The notes beneath the pieces are model-generated. The model saw only the letters and a program-made list of their open reading frames with translations, made no database searches and was not told where the DNA came from. Shown piece after piece: positions 5,591 through 57,691 of a DNA stretch of 64,000 bases (the first letter of the stretch is position 1; each line of letters begins with the position of its first letter). This stretch comes from Zygnema circumcarinatum SAG 698-1b. Taxonomy: Eukaryota; Plantae; Zygnematophyceae. The translations under genes were made by a program, and so were the position numbers. Location: assembly GCA_037447605.1 (NCBI GenBank), contig CM074805.1, forward strand, positions 4,993,361 to 5,057,360. The letters are read 5' to 3'.

Positions 5591-6286
5591 GAGAGAGAGA
5601 TTGGACATTGCGTTGATGTGTGAGAGGAGAAACAAAAAAAAAGGGGGGGGGAGAGATTAGCCAAAATGAAAGTACGAATTTTCCCGAAAGGGGGCGAGGA
5701 TATCCAAAAAGGGGGGAAACTGTATCATTTTCCAATTTTAATTGCTCAATGTAGTCACGTCAGGGGGCACGAAAAAGGGGCATGCCCCCCCCTGGGGGAG
5801 GGCGGCGCACGGGTCGGAGGGTGCCGTGGCCCCACCCCTCGCAGGCGGGCGGGCAGGCGGGCAGCCGCGCGGTTGGAGAGAACGACGCCGTGCGGACGAA
5901 GGGAAGCCGCCCGCCCTGCGCTGCGCTGCGCCCGCCCGCCCGCCCGCCCGCCCGCCCGCGGCCGTACGTACGCGCGGGACGGGACGGTACGGGACGGGGG
6001 GATCCGCCCGCTGCGGCGCGCGACTGCGCCCTTCGTTCGGAAGAAATATCTCGCGCGCCTCGGAGGGACCCGTGCGGCGTACGGCTTCTAGCCTAGAAGG
6101 GCGGGTCGCCTCGGCTGGCCGCGCGCCGCGGAAGCTTGAGTGCCAGCTGGCGGGCCACTGCCAGCGGCTGCCCGATCTGCAGAACGGACAAAAAAGGGCC
6201 CCACCGACCAGCAACCTGCGCAGTCCCAGCGCGCGGCTCGAACAAGCTTTAATTGAATTAAGTGTTCACTCGAATTCCTCAAAAAT

Positions 6287-6460
6287 AGGTGGAGTCAGAC
6301 CTTGACCATCGCTTACGAAATTCCCGAATTCCTTATGCCGGGTCGGGATCCGCGGCTCCGCCGTACCCAACCGTACCTAAATGCGTACTGTACCTAGCCA
6401 ATGCTTAATTTGCCCTACAGGCTTACGAAATTGATTTGGCAATGGTCAAGGTCTGACTCC
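6287..6460. mobile_element. Short MITE of the AGGGGGAGTCAGAC-TIR family (right TIR truncated)
   Basis: Left end AGGTGGAGTCAGACCTTGACCAT at 6287 (preceded by AAT); inverted ATGGTCAAGGTCTGACTCC ends at 6460. Both ends match the ends of the 7949-13619 element. Confidence 0.75.
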
Positions 6461-6685
6461 GCAGCGCCGGAACTGAACTGTGCTGCACCGGCCTGAACTG
6501 GACTGGAATAAACTGAACTGCGCTGCGGAAAACGCGCCGCAGACGGTCGACCCTCAGCCGAAGGTACGAATCCGCAAATATAAGCTGACGTCATTGGGTC
6601 CACGTCAGGAAGAAGTTGAAGTAAACCCTGCGAGCGCACCCTCACATGAATTCCGTATAGGTCGCGAGAATCTATAATTTGTGAA

Positions 6686-7547
6686 GGGGGCGACTATTTA
6701 CAGTGTACGTTTTCTGAATGTAGTGTACGTTTTCGGGGAGCAGAAAAAAAATCCTTTTTTTGGCTGCCCGGCGCTGTTTCATACTTTTCAGAATAGATAC
6801 AGACCTTTTTTCGTCGGATGTACGGATAGTGATTTGAAATGTACGAAGCGCGCGCGTCTACAAGGTATAAGGGCGCAACACGTGGAGCGACATGATTGGT
6901 CGCGGCAACATATGACGTGACAAGTATGTTTGGGACCGTGACGTGACGAAACGAGACGCGACAAAAGTGAAGTCCGCGGACGGCAGTCGGAAATGGCGGG
7001 AAAAAAACTGACAGATTTTTCCTGAAACACGCTACGTTATGTGCCCTATCTTTTTCTGTCAGTTTTAATCCCCGCCATTTCCGACTGCCGTCCGCGGACT
7101 CCACTTTTGTCGCGTCTCGTTTCGTCACGTCACGGTCCCAAACATACTTGTCGCGTCATATGTTGCCGCGACCAATCATGTCGCTCCACGTGTTGCGCCC
7201 TTATACCTTGTAGACGCGCGCGCTTCGTACATTTCAAATCACTATCCGTACATCCGACGAAAAAAGGTCTGTATCTATTCTGAAAAGTATGAAACAGCGC
7301 CGGGCAGCCAAAAAAATGATTTTTTTGCTGCCCCCCGAAAACGTACACTACATTCAGAAAACGTACACTAGGGGGTGTCAGACTTAAAAAATTTCAGTAC
7401 GCGTGTTCGTAAGTTTGACATCAGAACGAGTACTCCAGTATAATCAAGATCCTCCTGCGGCGGAGTACTTTCGTAACCTTTTTTTTCGTAACGCTTTTCG
7501 TAAGATTTTGTTAAGTCTGACACCCCCTACTGTAAATAGTCGCCCCC
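6686..7547. mobile_element. Mutator-like non-autonomous foldback element with ~335-bp TIRs
   Basis: 6686-7020 is a near-perfect reverse complement of 7050-7547 once the nested 7370-7528 insert is removed. Ends GGGGGCGACTATTTACAG...CTGTAAATAGTCGCCCCC. Flanks TTTGTGAA/TTTCTGAA form an 8-bp TSD with one mismatch. Confidence 0.88.
7370..7528. mobile_element. 159-bp MITE nested in the right TIR of the foldback; 3-bp TSD ACT
   Basis: TIRs AGGGGGTGTCAGACTTAA / TTAAGTCTGACACCCCCT. Removing the element and one ACT restores exact complementarity to the opposite arm (CGTACACTGTAAA). Confidence 0.92.
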
Positions 7548-8559
7548 TTTCTGAAGGGTTATATTTCTTGAACAGAAGAAATCTGAAATTTTTTACTCTC
7601 CTTTAAAGTACATTTTGGTGTTGCAGTACAGCCTGCGCAGCACCTAGGCCGTACCTCCGGACCTAGGCCTGACCCGCCCCCGCGTCGCAGCCCCATATCA
7701 AGATCGGATTCGTCGTATCCCCACAACCGCCGCCAGGCTGGCAGATCCGCCTGCTCTAGGCTGCGCGGGCCCACTGGCGGCGAGGGTGCCACGCGTTGGC
7801 CCGCACGCCACCAGAGAATGCAAGGTGGTACGGACACGTGTACGGTCAGTATGGACGAATGTACAGTACAGTAGTGAGTTTAGGGATTGCAAAAAGTATG
7901 TACAAGGGGCTTCTAGAGTTTTAGATTTCAGAACTAGAACGTTCGAATAGGGGGAGTCAGACCTTGACCATCGCCCGCGGAATTGCAAGATTTCGACCGC
8001 GGAAAGGTATTGATTTCGATTTCCGAATTCGGATCGGAAACCACGGCTCCCCCCGAACCTCTGTCACGTCCGTACGGCGGAATAGGTTACAAAAATGCCC
8101 CCAAATTTCAGAATTCCGCGCTCCCCGGGAGGCCCCCCGTTTCGAAATTCCAGCTTTCCGCCGATGAGGAATCGTGCCCCGCCTTGTCGCCATGCGCGTC
8201 ACGCACGTGCGAGCGTCTCTCTGCCGCCGCCCGGACGCCGCGACCCGCCGCCGCGCAGAGCAGCGTTTCAGTGCTGGCACAGGTTTAGGGTTTCGCTTCC
8301 CCCCGCACCAGCGTCCTCTTTCCGGCAACTGTGAGCACCACGGGAGAGCGGTGAGCGAAGACGCCAAGGCGACGAGGTACTCCCTCTCTATTCCCCTCTG
8401 TTGCTGTCTCCCTCGTCTCTCCCTCTCTGTTCCCTCTTTCTCTCTCTCTTGCTATCTCCCTCTATCACTCTCGCCCTGTTATCTCTCCCACATTCTCCCC
8501 GCCTGTGCCACTCTGCCCTGCCTCCCTCGGCCTGGCCCATGCCTCCCTCGTCTCCCTTG

Positions 8560-9250
8560 CTGCTGCTTTTCTCGCTGCTTCGTTTTCTGCTGCTGCTGCT
8601 GCTTTTTCTGCTGCTGCCCCTGCTGCTGCACCAGTTGCTTTTAGTGCTCCTTCTTTCTCTGCTTCTGCTTCTGCTGCTGCTGCTGCTGTTTCCTTTTCAG
8701 CTGGTTTTGCTATTGTTGTGCTGTTGCTGCTGCTGCTGTTGTTGCTCCTGCCGTCTTTTCTGCTGCTGCCGCTGCTTTTTTTTGCTGCTGCCGCTGCCAC
8801 TGCTGGTGCTCCTGCTTTTTTTGCTGCTTCTTGTCTGCTACTGCTGCTGCTTTTGCTTCTTTTTCTGCTACTGCTCTTTTTACTGCTTCTTTTTCTGTTG
8901 CATTTTTTGCTGTTTCTTTTCCTGTTGCTGTTGCTATTGTTGTTCTGCTGCTGCTGCTGCTGCTGATTTTTTTACTGCTTCTTTTTCTGTTGCTTTTGTT
9001 GTTGCTTCATTCTCTGCTGCTGCTGCTATTGTTGTTCTGTTGCTGCTAGTGCTGCTGGTGCTTTTTTTACTGCTTTTTTTTTCTGATGTTTTTTTTGCTG
9101 CTTCTTTTTCTGCTGTTGTTGTGTTGTTGTTGCTGTGTTGCTGCTGCTGCTGCTGCTGCTATTGCTGTGCTGCTGGTGCTGGTGCTGCTGTTGTCCTTCT
9201 GCTGCTGCTTTTTCTGCTACTGTTGCAGCATTCATTTTCTTTTTTGCTAC
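8560..9250. repeat. (TGC/TGT/TTT)n degenerate trinucleotide tract, left arm
   Basis: Dense ctgctgctg...tttttt arrays; mirrored as (GCA)n on the plus strand at ~11560-11770, 12060-12270 and 12570-12910. Confidence 0.9.
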
Positions 9251-9400
9251 TGCATTCTTCTTCCGCATTCCGCATTGCCCTGTCCTTGTGCTTCCCGTTC
9301 CTTATGCTTGTGTTGTGTGTATGATTGCATATAATTCCTCCCCTTCCTTGTGCTTGTGTTGTGTGTATGATTGCATATAATTCCTCCCCCTCCCCATTAA

Positions 9401-9470
9401 GTCGAAGTGGCGGATTGGTTACGCAACTGTTGCAAAACAGGAATAAAGGGGTTCAAATCCCCTCTTCGAC
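9401..9470 (+). ncRNA. tRNA-Cys(GCA)-like 70-nt cloverleaf with 6-nt anticodon loop, copy 1
   Basis: Acceptor stem GTCGAAG/CTTCGAC 7/7; D arm GCGG-ATTGGTT-ACGC; anticodon arm CTGT-TGCAAA-ACAG; T arm AGGGG-TTCAAAT-CCCCT; A-box-like TGGCGGATTGG and B-box GGTTCAAATCC. Confidence 0.75.
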
Positions 9471-10215
9471 CTGCACTGTTCATTCATTCTTCCATTTGTA
9501 TTCATTTATAGTTTTTGTGTTTGTGCTTCATGTCTTATATTTGTTGTTATTTTTCCTAGTTGTTTTTATTGCTTTTTGCCTTTTCCTTCAAAACTTTGAA
9601 TACGTTTTACATCATATTTTCTTTTGAGCATATATAGGTAGTTTGCTAACAAAATTATGCCGGCACACTCAGGAAAAACTGTCTTCTTTGGTTTTTGGAA
9701 ACCTTGGTGGTATAAGCAACCATATCAAGTGCGGCAATGGGCTGTATTTGATGCCATCAGTACAATTATAGAATCCCTTGTAACTACGTGTGCTCAAAAT
9801 CCAAAACGTCCGGACTTAGGAGAAACAAGCTGATAAAGGTGCAATTGATTCAACAACAATACAAAAAATATCATTAGAATGATTGACGTGTGGGCAAAGG
9901 AGGGACAAAGTGGGCGGGGGTGGGAAGACGAGGATCCACAAGAGAGACTGGAGAGGGTTGAGATCCACTAAAGAGGAGAGCGAGAGTGAGTCGGGGATAA
10001 GGCATAAGAGGGAGACAACAACAAGAAGACTGTAAGGGGCAAAGAACACAAGATGCTAAGATGTCACATACTAAGATGGGGAAGGAGACACACGGGGTGG
10101 AACAGGAAGGGAAGTGACAGAAAAAAGAGAGGGCAAGACACAGCAAGGTAAGCGAAAGAGAGATAAGAAGGGAGGGGACAGGAAAGGGGGGGGGGGGGGG
10201 GGGNNNNNNNNNNAA

Positions 10216-10285
10216 GTCGAAGTGGCGGATTGGTTACGCAACTGTTGCAAAACAGGAATAAAGGGGTTCAAATCCCCTCTTCGAC
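10216..10285 (+). ncRNA. tRNA-Cys-like element, copy 2
   Basis: Identical to 9401-9470; lies in an 815-bp duplication that spans an N gap, so it may be an assembly duplicate. Confidence 0.55.
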
Positions 10286-11421
10286 CTGCACTGTTCATTC
10301 ATTCTTCCATTTGTATTCATTTATAGTTTTTGTGTTTGTGCTTCATGTCTTATATTTGTTGTTATTTTTCCTAGTTGTTTTTATTGCTTTTTGCCTTTTC
10401 CTTCAAAACTTTGAATACGTTTTACATCATATTTTCTTTTGAGCATATATAGGTAGTTTGCTAACAAAATTATGCCGGCACACTCAGGAAAAACTGTCTT
10501 CTTTGGTTTTTGGAAACCTTGGTGGTATAAGCAACCATATCAAGTGCGGCAATGGGCTGTATTTGATGCCATCAGTACAATTATAGAATCCCTTGTAACT
10601 ACGTGTGCTCAAAATCCAAAACGTCCGGACTTAGGAGAAACAAGCTGATAAAGGTGCAATTGATTCAACAACAATACAAAAAATATCATTAGAATGATTG
10701 ACGTGTGGGCAAAGGAGGGACAAAGTGGGCGGGGGTGGGAAGACGAGGATCCACAAGAGAGACTGGAGAGGGTTGAGATCCACTAAAGAGGAGAGCGAGA
10801 GTGAGTCGGGGATAAGGCATAAGAGGGAGACAACAACAAGAAGACTGTAAGGGGCAAAGAACACAAGATGCTAAGATGTCACATACTAAGATGGGGAAGG
10901 AGACACACGGGGTGGAACAGGAAGGGAAGTGACAGAAAAAAGAGAGGGCAAGACACAGCAAGGTAAGCGAAAGAGAGATAAGAAGGGAGGGGACAGGAAA
11001 GGGGGGGGGGGGGGGGAAGGGAAGGGAAAAACAGAGAATGGAGCGTGAGAGGGAGAGAAGGCAGGAAAAACAGAGAATGGAGCGTGGAAGAGGCAGGGAA
11101 TAACAGAGAATGGAGCGTGAGAGGGAGAGAGAGTGGGAGGGAGGGAGCAAGTGAGCACACGGAGACAAACATGAGGAGAGATGGGCAAAAGAAAGGGTCG
11201 CAGGTGGCAAACTAGACGGACGTCTATATGAATAATCTTAACAGACAGGAAGACAGTCTGTCTGCAGACCAGCCGTTCAAATGGAGTTTCCAAACACCAA
11301 GCTGCGAAGAGAGTGAAAAACAAAAAACAACTAAGATAAATAACCACAAATATTTTACATCAAATGCACAAACACAAACACTATATATGAATCAAAATAA
11401 ACAAATGAAAAAATAGTACGA

Positions 11422-11491
11422 GTCGAAGAGGGGATTTGAACCCCTTTATTACTGTTTTGCAACAGTTGCATAACCAATCCGCCACTTCGAC
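11422..11491 (-). ncRNA. tRNA-Cys-like element, copy 3, with U discriminator and T6 terminator
   Basis: Reverse complement GTCGAAGTGGCGGATTGGTTATGCAACTGTTGCAAAACAGTAATAAAGGGGTTCAAATCCCCTCTTCGAC is followed by T (discriminator) and TTTTTT within about 8 nt. Confidence 0.75.
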
Positions 11492-11924
11492 ATAATGGGG
11501 AGGGGGAGGAATAACATGCAATCATACACAACACAAGCATAGGCAAAGGAACAGGCAGCAGAAGAAGAAGAAGAAGAGGCAGCAGCAACAGCAGAAAAAG
11601 CAAGAGCAAAAAAAGCAGCAGCATAGAAAGCAGCAGCAACACCAACAGCTGCAGCAGGTGCTGCAACAGCAGTAGCAGCAGAAATAGCAAAAGCAGGAAA
11701 AGAAACACCACAAAAAGCTGCAGCAGCATCAACAGCAGCAGCAGCAACAGCAGCAGAAACAGCAGCACAAAACAAAATATGGTATACAAGGTATTCAAAA
11801 TTTTGAAAGAAACTCAAAAAACAAAAAAAACAACTAAGATAAATAACCACAAATATTTTACATCAAATGCACAAACACAAACACTATATATGAATCAAAA
11901 TAAACAAATGAAAAAATAGTACGA

Positions 11925-11994
11925 GTCGAAGAGGGGATTTGAACCCCTTTATTACTGTTTTGCAACAGTTGCATAACCAATCCGCCACTTCGAC
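11925..11994 (-). ncRNA. tRNA-Cys-like element, copy 4
   Basis: Identical to copy 3; part of a 503-bp tandem repeat. Confidence 0.65.
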
Positions 11995-13947
11995 ATAATG
12001 GGGAGGGGGAGGAATAACATGCAATCATACACAACACAAGCATAGGCAAAGGAACAGGCAGCAGAAGAAGAAGAAGAAGAGGCAGCAGCAACAGCAGAAA
12101 AAGCAAGAGCAAAAAAAGCAGCAGCATAGAAAGCAGCAGCAACACCAACAGCTGCAGCAGGTGCTGCAACAGCAGTAGCAGCAGAAATAGCAAAAGCAGG
12201 AAAAGAAACACCACAAAAAGCTGCAGCAGCATCAACAGCAGCAGCAGCAACAGCAGCAGAAACAGCAGCACAAAACAAAATATGGTATACAAGGTATTCA
12301 AAATTTTGAAAGAAACTCAAAAAACAAAAAAAAAACAACTAAGATAAATAACCACAAATATTTTACATCAAATGCACAAACACAAACACTATATATGAAT
12401 CAAAATAAACAAATGAAAANNNNNNNNNNAGAAGACTGAGGCAAAGGCAACATAGCAAGGGGCAAAGGCAAAGGATGTCGGGGCAGGGGCAAGGGAGGTA
12501 AAATACGGAACGTGGAATGCGGAATGCGGAATGATGAATGAAGCAACAATACAAATAAAACAAAACCTACAGCAGCATTAGCATAAAAGCAAGAGCAAAA
12601 AAAGCAGCAGCATAAAAAGCAGCAGCGACATCAGCAACAGCAGCAGCAACATCAACAGCAGCAGCAGGAGCTGTAGCAGCAGCAGCAGGATAAGAAGCGG
12701 TTGGAGCTGCAGCAGTAGCAGCAGAAACAGCAGCAACAGCAGTAGCAGCGGCAGCAGCACAACACAAAAACAATAGCAGAAACAGCAGATGAAGAAGAAG
12801 AAGAGGCAGCAGCAGCAGCAAAAAAACCAAAAGAAAAAAAGCGCCAGCTTAAAAAGCAGGAGCAACATCAACAACAGCAGCATAAAAAGCAGCAGCAGCA
12901 GCAGTAGCAAAAAGAGCACCAATGGAGACAAGGGGGGCATGAGCAAAGGCGAGGGAGGCAGGGGCAGGTGCAAGAGCACAGGAGGCAGGGGCAAGGGAAA
13001 GGGAGGCAGGGGGAAGGGCAGAGAAGGCAGGTGCAGAGGCAAGGGCAAGGGAGGCAGGTGCAAGGGCACGGGAGGCAGGGGCAAGGGTAAGGGAGGCAGG
13101 GGCAAGGGCAAGGACTCACCGCTGCTCAAGTCCGCCGTCGTCCCTAAAAACCGATCGCGCTTTTGCCGTGGTCGACGGCACACCGCTCACCGTTCACCGT
13201 TCACTGGGGTGAGGCGAGAGGACGCTCTGCTCACTCCGCTGCAAGGATGGCGAGGGCGATGGCGAGGGAGGAGCCCTATACCCTAAACCCGAGCTGATCT
13301 GAGCTCGCAGCGAGCGAGCAGGTGGGCAGGCGGCGGCCGCGAGGCGCCGCGGCGGGACGCCGCTCGCGCGGTGGTGACGCGCATGGCGACAAAACGGAGG
13401 GCGGCGGGCGGCGGGCGGCGGAGGGAGCGCGTGGGGCCGAAAAGGGGGGAGTCAAACCTGGCCCGGAGATACGGAGGCAAAATAATTGCTCTCTGGAATT
13501 CGTGACGCCCGAGCCTGTCGAACGTCCACTTTTCGCGGAATTGGGCTGCCGTACAACGCGGAATTAGGGTCGGGGGTTTTCTGAATTGATTTGGCGCTGG
13601 TCTAAGTCTGACTCCCCCTATTGGTCTAAGATTCCGAGTTTTAGAAAATTTTTAGAACTTACGTACGACCAGTAAAATTGAACGACACGTACGGGCGGAC
13701 TGTCGGCAAATTGGCGCTGGCGATTGTAAAAGCGTTATAGAAAAGTTTAATAAAACGGCCAGACTTTTAGGACTTTTGGTTGGAATTCTCGTACACGACA
13801 CTGGGTTCTTATCCGCTAGCGAGAAAAACCGTATGGCGAAATTGGGGCCGGTGTTAACCAGATCCCTCGTGTTGCCCAGATCCGACGTGGCAAAACCTGA
13901 AATCCACACGTGTGACCGACCATATTGAGCCTTTGAAGTCATATTTT

Positions 13948-14888
13948 GGGTAGTGATATTTCCACCCCTTTTTTGGATCCAAACACCCCTTCCCGGCCGG
14001 GCAGATTTCAAAAAGGATTAAAAACGGAAAATGCTTTTTCACACCTTTTTGGAATCGATACCCACCCTCCATCGGCAGATTTTATTTTTGCGAAACAAGG
14101 AAAATGATAACCCGTCACCCCATTTTGAATATCCCGCCTACCTGAATTTTTTTCACGCTTGCGGTCAATCGCAGCCGTCGATTCCCTCGCAGATCGCAAC
14201 ACGGCAGATCACTATTTGATCTGCAGCCGGGCTCGGTCACAGCGAATGGCACGTGCCCACGTATCCCGCCAAACTCGTCTCAAAAGCTTGTCCGTACAAA
14301 TGTCGTACGGTCGCAACTTGAGAAACCCAAAATTTCGTACATTGAGACCAATCAAAATTTTCCACGTCAAAAATGTAACACGTGGCAAATGTTGATTGGC
14401 TGAGAGCTGACAATGAACGAGATCTCGGGCCGAGGGAAGCGCGCACTCGCTGTTGCGATCCGGCTTTGGCGGGACTCGTGGGCGCTTTCCATTCGCTGAG
14501 ATCGAGCCCGGCTGCAGATCGAACGGTGATCTGCAGTGGTGCGATCTGCGAGGGAATCGACAGCTGCGATTGACACACACGTGTGAACGACGGACACCCG
14601 CGAACGATCTCGTGGCGGACGGATCTTCCGCTCCGAGCGGATTCGGGCAGGCAGATATTTCTTTTCCTCAAAAAAAAAAATTTAGGGAGGCGGAATACAG
14701 TATTCAAAATGCGGTGACGGAGTATCATGTGCCTTGGTTAGCAAAAATAAAATCAGCCGACGGAAGAAGGTGGGTATCGATTCCAAAAAGATGTGAAAAA
14801 AGCATTTTCCGTTTTTAATCCCTTTTGAAATCTGCCCGGCCGGGAAGGGGTGTTTGGATCCAAAAAAGGGGTGGAAATATCACTACCC
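13948..14888. mobile_element. 941-bp Mutator-like non-autonomous element with long (~300 bp) imperfect TIRs and a perfect 8-bp TSD
   Basis: Ends GGGTAGTGATATTTCCACCCC...GGGGTGGAAATATCACTACCC; CATATTTT at 13940-13947 and 14889-14896; inverted similarity continues to ~14270/14470. Confidence 0.9.
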
Positions 14889-17800
14889 CATATTTTTACC
14901 TTTTTCGCTTTGTCAAATTGATTGTTCGGACCTCTCGTGTTCCCTGTTCAACCCCTCTGGGGCCGCGGCCGCCCTCGCTCGCTCGGCGGCCCGCGCCCTC
15001 GTCAAGATTCGTCAAGATTCGAAAGCGGTAGCGACTCTGACAGTGAGATCCTGTAAGCGAGGCCGATCTCGACCGTACAGCGCGCGGCTACGAAGGATGT
15101 CGGCGGGCAGTCGCGGGGCGGGCGCGGCGGCGCATGAAGGCGGCGGGTGGCGCGGACACAGCGGCTAACGTGCGGGGCGGAGCGGCGGCCATGGCCATGG
15201 CTCTGCGAGCGCTCGCTCTCCTCCTTGCCGCAGCGGCGGCGGCGGGGGTGGCGGCCGCAGGCGACAGGAAGGTAGGTTAGCAGAGCCGTTCTCAGCCACC
15301 GCTGCTTGCGGCTCCTCTCTTCCTCTTCACTTCTCGAGCAGGATGGAGGGCGGGGAGGGGCGAGGAGAGCAGAGGAGCAGCGGTCCATTGTAGTGTTGAA
15401 AGCTAGAAATAACTAGGCATATCTTGGTAGGAGAGCAGTGAGTGGCGAAATGTGCTCCGGCGAGGTAGGGAATGTGCGGCAAGCGGACCAACTGCGGGGG
15501 GGCGCCATCCATGGCGGGCACATGGCTGGGGGTGGGTGGGCGGCAGGTGTACATAGTGCGGCTGAACGGGCAGGCGGTGCCCCTAGCGGCTCGGCGCGAC
15601 CCCTCGCTGCGGACCTCCGCCGCGCGGAGGGAGGCGTACCGGAGGGGGCTCGTGGCGCGGCACGACCGCGTGCTGGCGGGGGTCGACGTCACGTCAGTGC
15701 CGGCCTGCCTGCCTGCCGCGCGCTCTCACTTGCTCATGCTTAATACTAGGCTCTCGTCTATGCCAATTTCCTTATAATTTTTTTCTTTTTTTTTTATTTG
15801 GGTTTTTACTCATATTTTTTTCATTGAATCGCGACACTTCGGGTAGCTTTGATTGAGAACCTATAATTCTCTATAATTAAATGAGGATAAATAATTTCTT
15901 TTTTTTTCGCAGTGCAAAGTCGAAGCTGTACAGTTACGACCACGCCATGGACGGCTTCGCGGCGGAGCTGACGGAGCAGCAGGCCAAAGCTCTCAAAGGT
16001 GAGAAATCATCGTCCGCTTTGCGGGCTTGCCAGGAGACATTTAAGGGCGTGCGAAAGGGCGCGAAAGGAAAAGAGATGAGTGCGAAAAAGCCTCCTTTGA
16101 TTCGTGTCAAGTGATCTGTCTTATTTTTTTCCTTGTATGAACCGCGCACGCGTGCAGGGGTTGCGGGGGTTCTGTCCGTGGCGGAGGACACTCACATTCA
16201 AGTCAACACGTTTTACAGTCCGACCTTCCTCGGCCTGACCCAGTCCGCCGCCAGCTCCCCGCCCGGCCTGTGGACCTCTTCCATGGGGAGTGGAGTCGTG
16301 GTCGGAATGATTGACACGGGTCAGCAGCTCGCCATAATTTTTTTTTTTTTTTTTTTTTTCAACACCGGATTCAGCCCGTCAAATCGATCAGTGTCACATA
16401 TGATTTTTTTTTTTTCTAACTTTCCTTCATGTTCGTTGAATGTTCGCCCGCCCTTCCAGGCATATGGCCGGAAGCCCCGAGCTTCAACGATACGGGTTTC
16501 CCTCCGCCTCCTGCAAAGTTCAAAGGCATCTGCCAAGCAGGATACAACTTCACTAACACCACTTGCAACAGGTGCGCGGTTGGAAGTCTCAGAAAACCAG
16601 CAAGTCCTCGAACAAAAGGTTGGGCTGAACTACTGAACAAGTGAGTGAATGCGCAGTAGGAGCTTACAAGGCTGTGAGCCTCGCCTCCGTTGGCAGGAAA
16701 ATTATCGGAGCTCGATTTTACTGTTCGGGCTACGAGAGCGGGAGGGGCCAAAACCTGAGCAACGGAGCATACGGCGAATTTCGATCCCCGCGGGACTCGC
16801 ACGGCCATGGCACCCACACGGCCTCGACCGCCGCCGGATCGACGGTGGACGCGATCGTTGGGAGCGCGAACTTTGGGAAGGCGCAGGGGCAGGCCCCCAT
16901 GGCGCAGATCTCCGTCTACAAGGTACGCGCGCAGCCAGCAGGCGGCGCGACGTGAACCGTGGCTCTCCGCACTAAGGGGACGTGCTTACTTTGATGGGTC
17001 CTGTGAATGGCGGAAAATTCTTGCCGGGAATTTCTGCAGGAGTATTTGGAGGTTGTGGTTTTAGAGTTTGTCAGTATAACAATGTCTTTTCCGTCTGTGC
17101 AGGTTTGCTTCGGCACATCTGCAAGTGGCGGGAACACTTGCTACGGCAGTGACATCACGGCGGGCATGAATGCGGCAATCAGTGACGGCGTGGATGTGAT
17201 CTCCGTCTCCTTGGGGGGCAGCAGCGCTCCCTATCCCTTATCGGACTCCATTTCAGCGGGGGCTCTTTCTGCAATCCAGGCCAACATAGTGACGGTCGTG
17301 TCGGCGGGAAACTCGGGCAGCGCGGTGAGGACAGTGGCGAATGTGGCCCCGTGGATGCTCGTGGTGGCGGCGGCGACATTCCCAAATGGCGGCGACGCTG
17401 TCGGGGGGCAGGGAGGCAGCGCAACCAAGACCATTGTTCTGGGTAATGGGGCGTCTTATAACGTGAGTTCGAAGCAGCACTCCACTCACTGTTTCCCCGT
17501 CGTAGACTAATGCTCGACCTTCTCATTTTGTGATGCTGATAATCTGGATGTACATGTTTTAGGGATTTCAAAAGCCTGTCTCTAAAACGAGGCTGTTTAT
17601 TTGTACGTTCCAGGGTTATGCGTATACTGCTGGAACTGGACCGGACCTCTTGCCCCTTATTTATGCCCAACAAGCAGGCCTTCCAGGCGTTGCAGCAACG
17701 GATGCCGGGTAATATTATACTCATCCACACTGTGCAAATGTGAACGTGTACTCTTTCTCTTCGAACATTCCTTTTCTTTACGTTGGTGATTGCATAAGAA

Positions 17801-19158: not shown

Positions 19159-20906
19159 AAGAGAGACTGAGAAACCTTCTTACACAGGGCCATTGAGGAG
19201 GAGTGCTCGACCTACCAAGCAACCTGGCTGGTTGGCCGACTTCCACCAACAACCCTCTTGGAAGATGACGAGAAAGAAGAAGGTTAGGACACCTAGTGAC
19301 TCGGCTGATTTTGCAGGCATAGCAACCTGCATGATGGCGCACATTTCAGAACCTCAAAGCTATGGAGAAGCTGTGCAAGGTGAGGATTCTGAAAAGTGGA
19401 GGGTGGCCATTGATAGTGAACTTAGCAGCCTGGAGGAAAATGGAACGTGGAGATTAGAGGAGCTTCCTAAGGGTAGGAAAGCTATTGGCTGTAAATGGGT
19501 ATTCAAGGTGAAGCGCAAGGCGGATGGGAGCGTGGATCGCTTCAAGGCTAGGCTGGTGGCAAAGGGGTATAGTCAAAAGGAGGGGATAGATTACTCGGAA
19601 ACCTTTGCACCAGTGGTAAAGTTCAACTCTCTTCGCTCACTCATTTCCATTGCAGCAGCTGAGAAGATGCATGTCCATCAGCTTGATATTAAGACTGCAT
19701 TTCTCTATGGGGATCTTAGTGAAGAGATCTATATGGAGCAACCGGAGGGCACGGTAGTAGCAGGCAAGGAGCACCTTGCAGCGGTGGCCAGTGAAGAGCC
19801 TTGTACGGGCCTGCCAGGCACCCCGACTGGGTACCAAAGATCACATCTTTATGGAGGAGGGATACAAGCGCTTCCAATCGGACCACTCAGTCTACAGCAA
19901 AGGTACCGGGAGAGAGCTTTTGTATGTGGGCATTTACGTTGATGATCTGATCATTATTAGTTCTTCCATGGAAAGCATTCAGAGTCTGAAGGACTTGATG
20001 AAGAAGAACTTTCAGATGTCAGACTTAGGGGAGGCCCAATACTTATTAGGAATTCAGCTCAAGAGGGGGCCAGATGGCAGTTTGTTCCTTAGTCAAGAGA
20101 AGTATGCAAAGGATGTCTTGGCTAAATTCAGAATGGACAAGTGCACTCCATGCACAAGTCCCATGGACCCTTCCCAGAAACGGGCTTTTCACGCGTCACC
20201 CCAGTCACGCGAAGAAGGGNANNNNNNGNNNNCNNNNNNNNNNNNNNCNGCCATCGGAAGCTTAATGTACTTGATGATAGGCACAAGGCCAGACTTGGCT
20301 AAGGCAGTTAGCACAGCGAGCAGGTACATGGAATTTCCAGGGGAGAGGCATTGGGAGGCCGTCAAGAGGATCTTCAAGTTCCTGAGGGGAACTGTTGACT
20401 ATGGGATCAAGTTTGAAGCCGGGAATGGAAGTGAGGTATATGGTTATACGGATGCAGATTGGGGAGGCGACGTAGATACAGCGAGATCTACCTCTGGCTA
20501 TGCATTCATGAACAGCGGAGGAGTGGTGACTTGGAGCTCCAAGCTCCAGGATTCAGTGGCACTCTCAAGTACTGAAGCTGAGTACATGGCAGCGTGCCAT
20601 GCGGCCAAGGAAGCAGCTTGGTTGCAGCAGTTCTTTGAAGAGTGTGAGAGGAATCAAACTCCCTTGCAGCTGTTTACAGATAACCAGTCCTCAATGACTT
20701 TGATGCAAAATCCAGTTTTTCACAAGAGGTCAAAGCACATAAGAATTCAGTATCATTTTGTGCGTGAGCTTGTGGTTGAAGGAAGAATAGCTGTAGCTTA
20801 TGTTGGCACGAAAGACCAGGCAGCAGACATGCTCACAAAAGGGGTCAATGGAGAGACGTTGTGGAAAAACAGCATGCTCTTAGGATTGGGGCCTCAAAGG
20901 AACTAA
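19159..20906 (+). CDS. Copia pol fragment (RT + RNase H) with apparent frameshift(s) near 19770-19850
   Basis: ORFs 19109-19942 and 19776-20906 carry consecutive RT/RNase H motifs in different frames. Low-quality bases at 20220-20250 suggest that some indels could be sequencing errors. Confidence 0.93.
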
Positions 20907-21690: not shown

Positions 21691-22924
21691 GATCTCACGT
21701 CTTTGCTGCATACAAACCCCAACGCGTGTACGGCGCTCTCTCGACGGCCTTAGACCCGCGGCAAACAATGTGGACGTTCATGTCCGGCACATCCATGGCC
21801 TGCCCGCACGTGTCTGGAATTGCTCTGCTGCTGCGCTCAATACGGCCCACTTGGTCTGCTTCGGCCATCTCCTCCGCAATCTCAACCACCGGTAAATAAG
21901 GAACCCTAGTTGGAAGACGAGCAATCGTGAAATTCGTGATTTTTTCGGATCATTGAAAGGAACACATCGCTAGCAAGGATGATCATAGAGGATGGTCAAA
22001 ATGCGTTGCAGAGGTGGAGCCTTCTATCACCGTTCATGGCGGAAGACTTCTGAACGCATTCTCAAGACACTTTTAACGCATGTTGTTCATACTTGTTCAT
22101 CTTATCAGTTTGTTGCGTGCTATGTCACTCGCAGCTGCGGCGCTGAGCGGTAACACGAACGACTATGGCAGCGGGATGGTTCGCCCCAATTACGCAGCGA
22201 ACCCGGGACTCGTGTATGAGACAGGGCCATGCGACCACGCCCTTCACGTGTGTTCCTTTTACTCTAACTACACGGCATATTACTACACCGGCTGCTATTG
22301 TCCGTCCAAATTCGAGGCATTCGATTACAACGCCCCTTCTCTCATGATGACTGGTGTTACCAGCAGCGGATTCACCACAGTCCGGCGCGTCACAAACGTG
22401 GGCCCTGCTGTCTCAACCTACACAGTCTCCATCAGCCAGCCACGAGGAGCTGTTGTGACAATCACCCCCTCTGTACTTTCGTTCAATGCCAGCAACCAAG
22501 TGCTTTCATTCACCATCAGTGTCAAGGGAACAGTAAACACAAACGATTCCAGTACCGGTGAGTTAACACGTGCACAACGAGAACTCGTGTTGGTCCTGTT
22601 ATTTGTGCTCCATCCAAGTCAGTAGCTGTTCTTTGAGATCCATGAGTTTATTCTGAGGGAACATATCGTTCAAGTTTTATCATATAAGTCTATCCCCAAC
22701 CAAATACTTGTACTGCTTGCAAATTTAGCAGCTGATTTCCGGTTCATGATTGCCACTGTAGTCAACTTTGGAAAAGTACGTACTGGCCTCACTTCCTGAG
22801 CTGCGTCAAAACTCTTGACATCTGCAGGAGATTACGCACTGGGACTGTGGAATTGGACGTCAACAGATGGCCAGTACGTTGTCAAAAGTCCCATCTTGGT
22901 GAATGTCATTGGAATCACAGGCCA

Positions 22925-25250
22925 ACCACCGTCACCACCACCACCGTCACCTCCCCCAAGACCCCCGCCTAACCCTCCTCCATCCCCACCACCATCCCCG
23001 CCACCAAAACCTCCCCCACGACCGCCTCCTAATCCTCTTCCTTCCCCGCCACCATCACCTCCCCCAAGGCCTCCTCCCAATCCTCCTCCTTCCCCACCAC
23101 CATCACCTCCCCCAAGACCCCCGCCTAATCCTCCTCCTTCCCCACCACCATCCCCGCCACCAAAGCCTCCCCCAAGGCCGCCTCCTAATCCTCCTCCTTC
23201 CCCACCACCTTCACCTCCCCCAAGACCACCTCCTAATCCTCCTCCTTCCCCACCACCATCACCTCCCCCAAGACCCCCACCCAATCTTCCTCCTTCCCCA
23301 CCACCATCCCCGCCACCATCACCTCCTCCAAGGCCACCTCCTAATCCTCCTCCTTCCCCACCGCCATCACCTCCCCCCAGACCCCCACCTAATCCTCCTC
23401 CTTCCCCGCCACCATCACCTCCCCCAAGACCCCCACCTAATCCTCCTCCTTCCCCGCCACCATCACCTCCCCCAAGACCCCCACCTAATCCTCCTCCTTT
23501 CCCTCCACCATCCCCGCCACCATCACCTCCCCCAAGGCCACCTCCTAATCCTCCTCCTTCCCCACCACCGTCACCTCCCCCCAGACCCCCACCTAATCCT
23601 CCTCCTTCCCCACCACCATCACCTCCCCCAAGACCCCCACCTAATCCTCCTCCTTCCCCGCCACCATCACCTCCCCCAAGACCCCCACCTAATCCTCCTC
23701 CTTCCCCGCCACCATCCCCGCCACCATCACCTCCCCCAAGGCCACCTCCAAATCCTCCTCCTTCCCCACCACCGTCACCTCCCCCCAGACCCCCACCTAA
23801 TCCTCCTCCTTCCCCGCCACCATCACCTCCCCCAAGACCCCCACCTAATCCTCCTCCTTCCCCGCCACCTTCCCCACCACCATCACCTCCCCCACGGCCA
23901 CCTCCTAATCCTCCTCCTTCCCCACCACCATCACCTCCCCCAAGGCCACCTCCTAATCCTCCTCCTTCCCCACCACCATCACCTCCCCCACGGCCACCTC
24001 CTAATCCTCCTCCTTCCCCACCACCATCACCTCCCCCAAGACCCCCACCTAATCCTCCTCCTTCCCCGCCACCATCACCTCCCCCAAGTCCTCCACCACG
24101 CCCTCCTCCATCGCCGCCTCCTCCCCCCCCTCCTAGGCCTCCTCCACCTTCTCCTCCCAAATCACCCCCCTTCAAACCTCCACCACCATCTCCACCGTCA
24201 CCGCCTCCTGCACCTCCACCACCATCACCCCCTCCGTCTCCACCTCCTCTATCACCACCGGTGCCTTCGTTACCACCTCCTTCGCCACCCCCTCCTTCGC
24301 CACCCCCTCCTTCGCCATCACCCCCCACACCACCCCCACCTTTGCCACCACCCCCCACACCACCCCCTCCTTCGCCACCACCCCCCACACCACCCCCTCC
24401 TTCGCCACCACCCCCCACACCACCCCCTCCTTCGCCACCACCCCCCACACCACCCCCTCCTTCGCCACCACCCCCCACACCACCCCCTCCTTCGTCACCA
24501 CCCCCTCCTTCGCCATCACCCCTCACACCACCCCCTTCTCCATCACTTCCACCTCCTTCCCCATCTCCTCCATTGCCACCCCCTCTGTCACCATCGCCAC
24601 CCCTTCCGTCGCCACCCCCCCCATCACCACCCCCTCCGTCGCCACCCCCCCCATCACCACCCCCTCCTTCCTCATCGCCCCCATCACCACCCCTCCCTTC
24701 CCCATCGCCCCCATCATCACCCCTCCCTTCCCCATCGCCCCCATCACCACCCCTCCCTTCCCCATCGCCCCCATCACCACCCCCGCCTTCCCCATCGGCA
24801 CCATCGCCACTCCTTCCTTCGCCACCAGTTCTCTCACCTTCCCTACTTTCCCCACCCCCTCCTTCGCCACCCCCTCCGTCGCCCTCGCCCCCGACACCAC
24901 CCCAGTCTCCATCACCACCCCCTCCTTCCCCATCGCCCCCGTCGCCACCCCCATTGTCTCCATCGCCACCCCCTCTTTCGCCGCCCCCTCCTTCAGCTCC
25001 TCCGTTGCCACTCCCTCTGTCACCATTGTCACCCCCTCCTTCGCCACTTCCTCCTTCACCACCCGCCTCTTCTCCACCCCCTCCTTCGCCACCGCCTCCT
25101 TCGCCTCCCTCACAACCTTCTTTGCCCGCCCCTCCGTCGCCGTCGCCGTCGCCGCCCCCGCCTTCGCCTCCTCCTCCATCACCTCCCCCTCCATCAGACT
25201 CCTTTCCTCCACCAGAGGCTTCCCCTCCACCGAACGCTCCCCCTCCACTG
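22925..25250 (+). repeat. Coding tandem repeat: ~36-bp ([12 protein letters not shown])n followed by irregular SPn/TPPPPSPPP repeats
   Basis: Seen directly in ORF 22815-25268; synonymous third-position variation between units. Confidence 0.93.
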
Positions 25251-26324
25251 GACGCTGTTCCCCCATAACTTGCTTTACACTCTTTTCGATGCAGGTATCG
25301 TTCCACTTCCCCTCGCAACATGACATCATTCTATTTATCTCTAATATTGTCTTCTGCTTCTACGGGCTAACAGTTTTTATTTCGATAGGCAGATGTGTAA
25401 AATGCCTACTTGTTCCAACCTGCCTTGTCTGACTGTCGTTGTCTGAATTTCGTCTTTTGTGCAGATCTAGAAGCGCTTGAAAGCACACAATCCTCCATTT
25501 TAAAATAGGAGGGATCCTGAGGGAGTTGAGGGAGCCTTCAATTAAATGCGTAGCTCGGCATGTGCAGTTTCGAAATATCCATTGATTTCACGAGTGTGAC
25601 ATCCTTGATTTCTACCTAAGTGAAGGCTAGCAATGTATTGAGGAAGGCCTGAGCGATAAGGTTTGCCTTAGAGTTTTGAGTGTGCAATTTTTCTTTTTTT
25701 GTTTAGCCGGCAGGAATGGGACATTCGATGCTTGGGCAATGTGAAAAAAAAATTCATAACTATATAAAGTTAGTACAATGACAGGAATTGTCGTCATCGC
25801 TACAGATTGTCGATTTTCTGTAAAGCAAACTCATCTGCTCGTCTGTGCCTGCCAGAGTAGCAACCGACCGATAAAGTCGGGCGTTGCTGGCATTCTTGCT
25901 TTCCCACTTGCCCTCTCGCCTTCATCCATCCCATTTCCCCCTCTCCCTCACTCCCCTCCACTTCCCTGAGTTCCCTCTCCTCCCTTTCCTCTCCCCACTA
26001 CCTGACTACCTCCCGCGTCGTAAATCTTTTTGCTTCGAGACTGCGCAGTCGCCATGATGCTACACCATATGTAGCACACTGACGAGTTCAAAGCCTGCAA
26101 AGTAAACATGCAACACTATGTTTTATTACAGCAAAAGAATAGAGTTGTCCTGAATCTCGCAGACCTCTTTGTAAGGAAAAGTAGCAATTGAAAGACAGGA
26201 AGCGGAAGCAGGACCTCAGGGCAGCACGCGACAAGGACAGAGCTCAGACGGCCTCGACGAGGAGGGGAGAGGGGAGGTGCACAGGCCCCACAGGCGGCCG
26301 TGGGCCACAGGGCGACCGAATGAT

Positions 26325-56282: not shown

Positions 56283-57691
56283 CACGTGGCTGGGCGGCCA
56301 GGCCGTCTTCCAGCTCGGGAACGCGCTCACAGCCGGCGCGCTGCAGGCCCCCGCCGCCGCCTGGCTGGGCATCAGCTACCCGGAGCTCGCGTGCTTTCTG
56401 GCTTTCTGGTCGCTCCAGGTGGCGATCATATGGAACGGAATCGAAAGCATTCGGGACCTGGAGGCGTACAGCGCTCCTATTTTGACATTGTAAGAGCGCC
56501 AACTCTTGGAAGCCGTCCCTTATCATGTTGCTCCTCCATCAGGTTCACCTTTCCGATTTACCTCCGTATTGGCACGCATGTGAGCGCAGGATGTGTGCGG
56601 CGCTTCTCTGGTGGGCGTATGCGAAGGCGGGCAGTTTCGGGGAAATGCTGTCCACGCCGTCTCAGTTCTGTATTGGGGGACCGAAAGAAGGTCAATTTTT
56701 CGCTACCTTCTGTCCGGCTCTCACAGCGAATATTAGTTTCTGGGCGACGCTGAGTCTCAATATTCCAGGTAAACACACCCCTCTCCCCTTCCCCCTCTCC
56801 CCTTCCCCCTCCCCCCCAGTTCTTTTTCATTCTGATCCTCTCCCTTTTGAAAACGTCCTAAAAGTGGACATGTTGAATACCTGTAGGCGAACAGACCTAG
56901 AAAATCCGTTGTTAATTCGTGGCCTTCTTTTTTTCTTTTCACATTCGGCAGATTTTACCCGTTATACTCGGAGCCAGGGGGACCAGCTGGCAGGGCAGGC
57001 CATCGGCCTCCCCCTCTTCATGGCGGCCTTCACCTTTGTGGGTCTGGCGGTGACGTCGGCAACAGTGGTGATCTTTGGACGAGTCATTTCGGACCCCATT
57101 GAGCTTCTGGGCCAAATAAAGGGCACCGCTCCGGTCCTCCTCTCCCTCCTGGGCCTCACCCTCGCCACCCTCACCACCAACATCGCCGCCAACGTGGTCG
57201 CGCCCGCGAACGCTCTCATCAATCTCAGCCCGGAAACGATTTCCTTCAGAACGGGCGGCCTCATTACGGCGCTCGCCGGGATCCTGCTCATGCCGTGGCG
57301 CCTCATCCAGTCGACGCAAGGCTTCATCTTCACGTGGCTCATCGGATACTCCGCTCTTTTGGGCCCGGTGGCCGGCATAGTCATTGTCGACTATTTCCTG
57401 CTTCGGGGTCGGAAGTTGGACATCGACGCCCTCTACTCCTTGGACGCCTCGGATCCCTATTGGTATGCAGGCGGCTACAACCCGGCGGCGCTTGCAGCCA
57501 TGGCGGTTGGGATCGCCCCCAACGTGCTGGGATTCCTGCAGGCAGCGGGCTTTGTTGCGTCCGTTGCTCCGATTTGGACTGCGATTTACAACAACGCGTG
57601 GCTCGTGGGCTTCGCGGTCGCCGCCGCCGTGTACGCCGCGCTCACGCTCATGCTGCGCCGCCCCGCCGGGACGCCGCAACCCGCCCTGTGA
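55567..57691 (+). CDS. NCS1: Nucleobase cation symporter 1 (plastid purine/uracil permease)
   Basis: Transit peptide; [70 protein letters not shown]; [23 protein letters not shown]; [14 protein letters not shown]; [20 protein letters not shown]. Exons ~55567-55921, 56019-56489, 56599-56768, 56951-57691. Confidence 0.96.

Follow-up and report, generated by a model that had tools for sequence, protein, structure and literature searches.

Capture of foreign sequence by DNA transposons is known, as are repeats derived from tRNAs and foldback elements whose arms are repetitive. Foldback or long-terminal-inverted-repeat elements, such as FB and Galileo of Drosophila and FARE and SoFT of plants, are non-coding and multi-copy, have long mirror-image arms built of tandem subrepeats and share their termini with relatives of MITE size (MITE: miniature inverted-repeat transposable element). 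The element described here occupies positions 7950-13618 of a stretch of Zygnema circumcarinatum SAG 698-1b DNA (contig CM074805.1, positions 4,993,361 to 5,057,360), which was analysed over its full length of 64,000 nt and is referred to below as the window. It resembles the foldback elements in all of these respects and differs from them in two: it is flanked by a 2-bp TA, as compared to the 9-bp duplication of FB, and its arm subrepeat holds a complete tRNA-shaped unit. The tRNA units sit in the mirror-image arms of this TA-flanked, non-coding terminal inverted repeat (TIR) element, and we consider it probable that they are amplified relic (pseudo-)tRNA genes in a non-autonomous foldback transposon. 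A foldback element with a complete tRNA-Cys of bacterial or mitochondrial type as its arm subrepeat is an unusual combination, and a search of the literature for a transposon with a tRNA or tRNA-Cys module found nothing specific; most likely, the finding is a curiosity and not a new RNA system.

Similarly to tRNA-derived short interspersed elements (SINEs), the locus displays a unit of tRNA origin, with A and B boxes, that was amplified in a mobile element. Here, however, the unit lies in a cut-and-paste TIR element and was not retroposed; copies remain homologous for 45-52 nt upstream of position 1, and the units have neither a tail nor target-site duplications of their own. Pack-MULE and Pack-TIR elements are likewise non-autonomous DNA elements that have non-transposon sequence enclosed by their TIRs and amplified along with them; in the present case the captured piece appears to be an organellar- or bacterial-type RNA gene instead of a fragment of a host protein gene, and it is now a tandem subrepeat. 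Cassandra elements (terminal-repeat retrotransposons in miniature) are mobile elements with an RNA polymerase III (Pol III)-type gene module in each terminal repeat, but they are long terminal repeat (LTR) retrotransposons with a 5S module, whereas the present element is a DNA transposon with a putative tRNA-type Pol III module. Finally, mascRNA and other non-decoding tRNA-like structures share with our unit the cloverleaf-like fold and the defective anticodon arm; mascRNA is known for its processing by RNase P and RNase Z to a small RNA, whereas the present unit is known from its sequence alone.

To characterize the units, tRNA-like genes were called with ARAGORN and scored with Infernal against the Rfam covariance model RF00005. 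Four 71-nt units were the only tRNA-like genes found in the window, each of them labeled 'tRNA-???' with the four-base anticodon gcaa (the two minus-strand calls span 11420-11491 and 11923-11994). The left pair scored 46.4 bits and the right pair 46.9 bits, past the gathering score of 29 and with an E-value of ~1e-6 over the whole window; except for tRNA, no Rfam family reached threshold in the window. The tRNA shape is real and far beyond chance. From the 5' end, each unit reads as an acceptor strand (GTCGAAG), TG, a D arm (GCGG-ATTGGTT-AYGC), A, an anticodon arm (ACTGT-TGCAAA-ACAGK), a variable loop (AATAA), a T arm (AGGGG-TTCAAAT-CCCCT), the second acceptor strand (CTTCGAC) and a discriminator, which is C in the left and T in the right version. 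The acceptor stem of 7 bp, the 5-bp T stem with its TTCAAAT loop, the GG in the D loop and the variable loop of 5 nt had all been noticed in a first-pass annotation of this DNA, and were borne out by direct reading and by counting of the pairs. Of the 21 stem pairs, the only ones that cannot form are G13·A22 (both versions) and A27·G43 (left version). When folded without modifications, the unit prefers a non-cloverleaf structure (-25.5 kcal/mol versus -19.5 for the cloverleaf; z = -4.5 against shuffled sequences), a result that decides nothing; such a minimum is common among real tRNAs.

The anticodon arm is 16 nt long in all units, as compared to the normal 17. It can be drawn with a 5-bp stem and a 6-nt loop, or with a 4-bp stem and the 8-nt loop UUGCAAAA. 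The first-pass annotation had described a 6-nt loop; the short arm stands, but the 6-nt loop is one of two readings, and both Infernal and ARAGORN favor 4 bp and 8 nt, with stem position 31 deleted. A functional decoder has a 5-bp anticodon stem and a 7-nt loop with U33, which an arm of 16 nt cannot give, and an RNA made from these units, if any, could not be a normal decoder, in line with the non-decoding nature already proposed for it. One possible explanation is that the product is nevertheless a working decoder with an 8-nt loop, reading a quadruplet (GCAA) or unusual in some other way. The four-base gcaa call would fit this, as would the otherwise sound cloverleaf and U73, the Cys discriminator. 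We find this explanation hardly credible, as the stem would be limited to 4 bp, the units are carried by a transposon in multiple, decaying copies, the bacterial-type body need not suit the nuclear-cytosolic cysteinyl-tRNA synthetase and processing enzymes, and tens of frameshift-suppressor genes would be harmful.

Of two marks of tRNA-Cys, GCA lies in the loop of the units, and U73 is seen in the right copies only (C73 in the left). With one T added to the TT run, both versions were called by ARAGORN as a canonical tRNA-Cys(GCA); when 80 single-base insertions were made across the arm, 18 yielded Cys(GCA) and 16 yielded Leu(CAA). In alignments with real tRNA-Cys, the base that is lacking falls at position 31. 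A pattern drawn from the D arm and loop of the window unit (TGGCNGANTGGTNANGC, 5-6 nt, then TTGCAAA) was searched in prokaryotic genomes and in IMG/VR. This combination (UGGCNGANUGGUNANGC with a UUGCAAA loop) was present at no fewer than 120 prokaryotic loci, mostly of Alpha- and Gammaproteobacteria, and at no fewer than 120 IMG/VR loci. All 234 extracted matches were tRNA-Cys-shaped; 180 of them were 71 nt long, and 207 ended in T73. Among the matches listed, the best identity was 55-56 of 71 positions, with 18 of 19 across GUGGCGGAAUGGUUACGCA. The unit thus has in common with proteobacterial, mitochondrial and phage tRNA-Cys(GCA) the D arm GUGGCGGAxUGGUUACGCA (18/19 when compared to phage and alphaproteobacterial genes), the UUGCAAA loop, U73 (right version) and a length of 71-72 nt, and it differs in the lack of base 31, the 16-nt arm and the location in nuclear repeat DNA. 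These proteobacterial and viral tRNA-Cys matches lend good support to the earlier view that the unit is bacterial or organellar in style; to our knowledge, plant cytosolic tRNA-Cys looks different from the unit. Mitochondrial DNA would be the simplest source of a proteobacterial-type tRNA-Cys in the nucleus.

The exact 3' half of the unit (T arm and acceptor) was also searched, in IMG/VR, in 185,579 prokaryotic species (a single genome per species) and in metagenomes. No match was found in IMG/VR or in the prokaryotic species genomes; the three metagenome matches were all tRNA-Leu genes in AT-rich tRNA arrays, and an origin from tRNA-Leu was considered. The likeness to tRNA-Leu (56/86) rests on the common T arm and acceptor only, and this origin was rejected, as it requires the loss of a long variable arm and several changes in the anticodon arm, versus a single deletion for tRNA-Cys. 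As a separate observation, a phage- or organelle-like metagenome contig (L001; an array of 25 tRNA genes, 39% GC) displays a 'tRNA-???' call with an anticodon of four bases, caac, at 5805-5876, between two tRNA-Leu genes.

The first-pass annotation had placed the units inside a DNA transposon, and this was correct, as indicated by shared termini, TA flanks and related MITEs. The motif TAGGGGGAGTCAGAC occurs at 7948 on the plus strand and at 13620 on the minus strand, with TA outside the G-run at both ends. The TIRs are ~30 nt long and about 83% identical, and they are accompanied by a target-site duplication, although a palindromic duplication of 2 bp is by itself weak evidence. Going inward, the arms consist of the TIR, a GC-rich block with TTGTCGCCATGCGCGTCAC and the telomere-type GGTTTAGGGT, a CT-rich stretch, (TGC)n/T-rich subrepeats and a tRNA module that points inward. 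A foldback structure is indicated by 25 inverted pairs, tandems of 503 bp and 46 bp, and (TGC)n arrays. No Pfam-bearing or convincing open reading frame (ORF) was found inside the element, which is non-autonomous and has low-complexity ORFs only in its 2-kb middle. A 100-aa ORF spanning the unit shared no words with any member of a collection of 5.8 billion protein sequences. Its family occupies more than one site, as seen from two MITEs with the same or related termini in the window and from multi-copy depth and variant contigs in four sequencing runs. Both MITEs are without the tRNA module, and elements with such termini therefore do not always carry the tRNA. In the GC-rich blocks, the telomere-type motif (GGTTTAGGGT / ACCCTAAACC) was observed in both arms, at 8282-8293 and 13279-13292, next to TTGTCGCCATGCGCGTCAC; read by eye, this block might be a captured piece of a promoter.

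Public sequencing data were examined as Logan contigs. Of 24 runs, 21 contained part of the stretch and 3 next to none of it; four runs from four studies were compared with positions 9990-11545 at a likeness of at least 85%, namely X1 and X2 (DNA, different studies), X7 (untyped) and X19 (labeled 'RNA?'). The assembly contains two gaps that abut copies of the unit. On either side of the first gap, 805-nt stretches (9399-10203 before it, 10214-11018 after it) are identical at 803 positions, in what is assembled as an 815-bp repeat. Both mismatches lie at the boundary between the 18-G run and the gap; in the second copy the run is 16 G long and further sequence follows. The contig that follows the gap starts two bases ahead of the tRNA and repeats all of the sequence up to the poly-G. 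A near-exact overlap with a difference in homopolymer length is the usual mark of unmerged overlapping contig ends. Because the flanks of the gap match so closely, the left pair was counted as one copy, most likely an unmerged contig overlap; when it is collapsed, the element, assembled at 5,669 bp, has a length of about 4,854 bp and three tRNA units. A poly-G joined to AAGTCGAAG would mark a real 815-bp tandem. No contig listed in the four runs joins the poly-G to the tRNA start, which is not proof, as k-mer contigs break at poly-G; at the one loose end listed ahead of 10214, from run X7, the usual upstream module is found (...CCTCCCCTCCCAATT). The first-pass annotation had counted four copies; four units are present in the assembly, but their independence was overstated, as the left pair is likely one copy.

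The 503-bp units of the right pair differ by two substitutions and the length of an A run, and a third, partial unit ends at the second gap (12420-12429), exactly where its tRNA would start. This tandem is probably real, since X2, an independent DNA run, also shows its junction (at the loose end at 11318). The two abutting gaps and the 805-nt overlap across one of them also raise the question of whether the whole feature is an assembly artefact. This is very improbable: apart from the right tandem junction, the short-armed unit itself was found in contigs of all four runs, at high depth and in several variants. The short arm is hence not an error of assembly; for the unit itself the artefact reading is refuted, and it touches the copy count only. 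A third T, which would have restored a normal loop and had been raised earlier as a possible outcome of inspecting reads, was not seen: none of the best-supported indels listed in the contigs of the four runs inserts a T in the TT run.

In the two DNA runs (X1 and X2), the depth summed over contigs was 1,300-2,100 over the tRNA and its near flanks, versus roughly 50-120 over the middle of the element, a difference of roughly 10-30 times, although summed contig depth is not equal to copy number. The module is multi-copy, with probably tens of copies. The letters of the family majority are C23, U43 and mostly U73, and they yield perfect stems. The variant 11470 A>G (C23 on the tRNA strand) accounted for 100% of the depth in X2 and X7 and for 95% in X19, 10256 G>T (U43) accounted for all of the depth in all four runs, and at 10286 T73 was the majority in three of the four. 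Compared to this majority, each of the window versions carries one derived, stem-weakening substitution. The G43 of the left copy (9441/10256) was observed in no contig of the four runs, all of the depth being T, and represents a private variant of low frequency or else an error in the assembly consensus.

In other contigs, three stems carry a G>A change, namely the anticodon stem at 10244, the T stem at 10263 and the acceptor at 10283, and the listed variants include no change of their partners; further changes on the tRNA strand are G12>A (11480) and G4>C (11488). At the listed sites, two tRNA units have 8 variable positions in 142 nt, and downstream flanks of equal length have 8 substitutions and 5 indels; among these variants the tRNA varies about as much as the flanks. 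C>T was the commonest change in every run, and an excess of this kind is expected for methylated repeats. We regard the module as probably a young, neutrally decaying repeat because the defect is shared, the consensus has perfect stems, and the changes are private, uncompensated and often C>T.

To compare the two arms, the left and right modules were aligned globally. The tRNA is identical at 68 of 71 positions; the two differing body positions had been noticed before, and the discriminator is to be added to them. Upstream, 49 of 60 positions (82%) are identical over -60 to -1, with the proximal ~45 nt kept best (three substitutions and one 2-nt indel), which agrees with the ~50 bp of conserved upstream sequence described earlier. 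Downstream, identity is 46/62 (74%) over +1 to +60 and 45/72 (62%) over +61 to +120, close to a previous estimate of ~70% by eye, and there is no homology beyond. The well-kept block therefore runs from about -45 to +71, is wider than the tRNA alone, and includes TATAA at -25 to -21. Both of the body differences are one-sided (G12-C23 in the left versus G12·U23 in the right version, and A27·G43 versus A27-U43), and the covariation check suggested in the first-pass annotation yielded no compensatory, two-sided stem change among the window copies, which comprise only two distinct sequences. The same annotation had taken the RNA to be selected. The extent of the block from -45 to +71, the lack of compensation, the uncompensated G>A changes, the flank-like variation of the tRNA and the MITEs without the module all argue otherwise, and the apparent conservation would reflect youth and shared descent, not selection at the RNA level. 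Decay at the rate of the flanks without compensatory changes, the contrary outcome foreseen there, is approached but not proven.

Several observations weigh against a purely neutral relic. Between the arms, the tRNA is clearly better kept (68/71) than the downstream sequence (46/62), the sequence further upstream and the TIRs (about 83%), and no variant of the B box is listed in any of the four runs. The consensus stems are flawless, the T6 of right-type copies is well placed and a TATA-like motif lies at -25, and a neutral relic need not keep any of these. In addition, the variants compared above are the best-supported sites in contigs, not in reads, and a further 33 substitutions and 45 indels lie beyond them.

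Because the tRNA and its upstream block are better preserved, the B box is intact and the T6 is well placed, we retain as the main rival a role of the module in cis. According to this scenario, the module is kept for the transposon as a Pol III/TFIIIC-binding unit that serves as a chromatin boundary, as a nucleosome-free patch or for transcription across the arm, and the anticodon defect is tolerated or favored. Such a role would be consistent with the A and B boxes, intact in all four units, with the position of TATAA within the kept 45 nt upstream, with the rank of the tRNA and upstream block as the best-kept part of the arms, and with the T6 run 8 nt past the discriminator in right-type copies, which had been correctly described before together with their U discriminator. 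In left-type copies, however, no T run of at least four occurs before a T5 at about +55; the module is absent from MITEs that share the termini, stems are broken by changes in variant copies, and the boxes are the universal D and T loops of any tRNA, to be expected in a young relic. On balance, we judge a cis role to be unlikely but deserving of attention. The fuller proposal, that a captured tRNA-Cys of bacterial or mitochondrial type, disabled as a decoder, is kept as an active Pol III/TFIIIC module shaping the chromatin or transcription of the transposon, appears to us quite unlikely. As the Pol III signals (A box, B box, TATA-like motif and, in right-type copies, T6) are intact, some copies of the relic may be transcribed or bound by TFIIIC as a side effect.

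An additional scenario concerns longer transcripts. In the 'RNA?' run, contigs of 783 nt and 596 nt run through the tRNA into both flanks; the RNA present is either part of longer molecules, or what was sequenced is carried-over genomic DNA. These contigs part from the window sequence at 10398 and 10834, where splice signals are absent, and most likely stem from other copies of the element. The shared break at 10834 was considered as a splice site and rejected, as the letters flanking it are not GT/AG on either strand. According to the longer-transcript scenario, the cloverleaf is a tag for RNase P and RNase Z in an RNA polymerase II transcript that starts from the telobox/GC-rich, promoter-like module, and its cleavage frees a small RNA, as mascRNA is freed from MALAT1. 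A tRNA-like fold without a working anticodon loop suffices for both enzymes in the case of mascRNA, which speaks for such a tag, as do the inward succession of GC-rich/telomere-type block, CT-rich stretch, (TGC)n and tRNA on one strand and the fact that contigs of runs labeled 'RNA?' or '?' span the tRNA and its flanks. The same contigs, however, are unstranded and may include genomic DNA, and they pass straight through the tRNA, the opposite of what efficient processing would yield; no pile-up of ends is seen at the tRNA borders, though contigs cannot show one, and the promoter was read by eye only. Taken together, a processing tag is improbable.

In the history that we favor for an amplified relic, a proteobacterial-type tRNA-Cys(GCA) gene, most simply a mitochondrial one, would have reached the nucleus, and its T run between anticodon stem and loop would have been shortened by one base (TTT to TT), leaving the 16-nt arm. 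The defective tRNA, with ~45 nt upstream and ~100 nt downstream, would then have become an arm subrepeat of a TA-flanked foldback TIR transposon, so that all copies inherited the defect from a single founder. Transposition, together with tandem expansion in the arms, would have generated tens of near-identical copies, each of which subsequently decayed singly by uncompensated changes, most commonly C>T. The data themselves show how the units are built, that they lie in a transposon, that they are multi-copy, that they share the defect and how they decay; the source of the tRNA, the single founder and the lack of function are what we infer from these data.

If the units are relics only, their value is practical: tRNA finders and annotators will flag tens of them as unusual tRNAs or as decoders of quadruplets, and masking them as transposon sequence is advisable, while the assembly around both gaps needs correcting. 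They also offer a tidy case of a DNA transposon that amplifies what appears to be an organellar- or bacterial-type RNA gene. Were the Pol III module active, the carriage of Pol III promoters would extend from LTR to cut-and-paste elements, as a counterpart of the 5S module of Cassandra; the question is not a long-standing one. The coordinates of the features described are presented in Table 1.

Table 1. Features of the tRNA-bearing element and of its MITE relatives (window positions).
Feature	Position	Strand	Basis
Short MITE, ~180 bp, termini GGTGGAGTCAGACCTTGACCATCGC ... GGTCAAGGTCTGACTCC as in the element, without tRNA module	6286-6463	+	pattern match
161-bp TA-flanked MITE, related termini TAGGGGGTGTCAGAC, without tRNA module	7369-7529	+	pattern match
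TA flank (7948-7949) and left TIR, beginning GGGGGAGTCAGACC	7948-7978	+	pattern match, end alignment
Plant telomere-type motif GGTTTAGGGTTT in GC-rich subterminal block kept in both arms	8282-8293	+	alignment
(TGC)n/T-rich low-complexity subrepeats, left arm	8560-9290	+	repeat families
46-nt tandem duplicate ahead of upstream module	9293-9338	+	repeats
Upstream module kept in both arms, TATAA at -25 to -21	9339-9400	+	repeats, arm alignment
tRNA-Cys-like unit, left version (C23, G43, C73)	9401-9471	+	ARAGORN, RF00005
Downstream flank, right-arm homology 74% falling to 62%	9472-9575	+	arm alignment
Assembly gap, 18-G run just before	10204-10213	.	flank self-comparison
tRNA-Cys-like unit, same as 9401-9471	10216-10286	+	probably one copy assembled twice
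503-bp tandem subrepeat of right arm, 2.2 units	11316-12419	-	repeat analysis
T6 run on tRNA strand, 8 nt past discriminator	11408-11413; second at 11911-11916	-	sequence
tRNA-Cys-like unit, right version (U23, U43, U73)	11421-11491	-	ARAGORN, RF00005
tRNA-Cys-like unit, right version, within second 503-bp tandem unit	11924-11994	-	ARAGORN, RF00005
Right TIR and TA flank (13619-13620)	13590-13620	-	end alignment, pattern match

Other repeats were observed on both sides of the tRNA-bearing transposon. To its left, a palindromic, foldback-like element of ~880 bp spans 6680-7560, its arms mirrored around 7020-7060. The 161-bp MITE (7369-7529) is inserted in the right arm of this palindrome, where that arm has three more bases than the left; the target duplication of the MITE may be TA or 3 bp. 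Directly to the right of the transposon, another inverted-repeat element extends over 13943-14893; its arms (13943-14039 and 14797-14893) are 97% complementary, and further pairs are nested between them (14068-14131 with 14701-14764, and 14164-14273 with 14465-14574).

Elsewhere in the window, an ORF at 19776-20906 displays a reverse transcriptase domain of the Ty1/copia type (RVT_2, E 1.5e-22), beside a cluster of small gaps at 20220-20249. In a 2.5-kb region at 22800-25330, the GC skew is extreme (-0.55 to -0.61) and both strands have open frames longer than 800 aa; the region is probably a low-complexity repeat and not a gene. A long, exon-like ORF at 56525-57691 contains a cytosine/purine permease domain (NCS1, Transp_cyt_pur) with an E-value of 3.8e-53.

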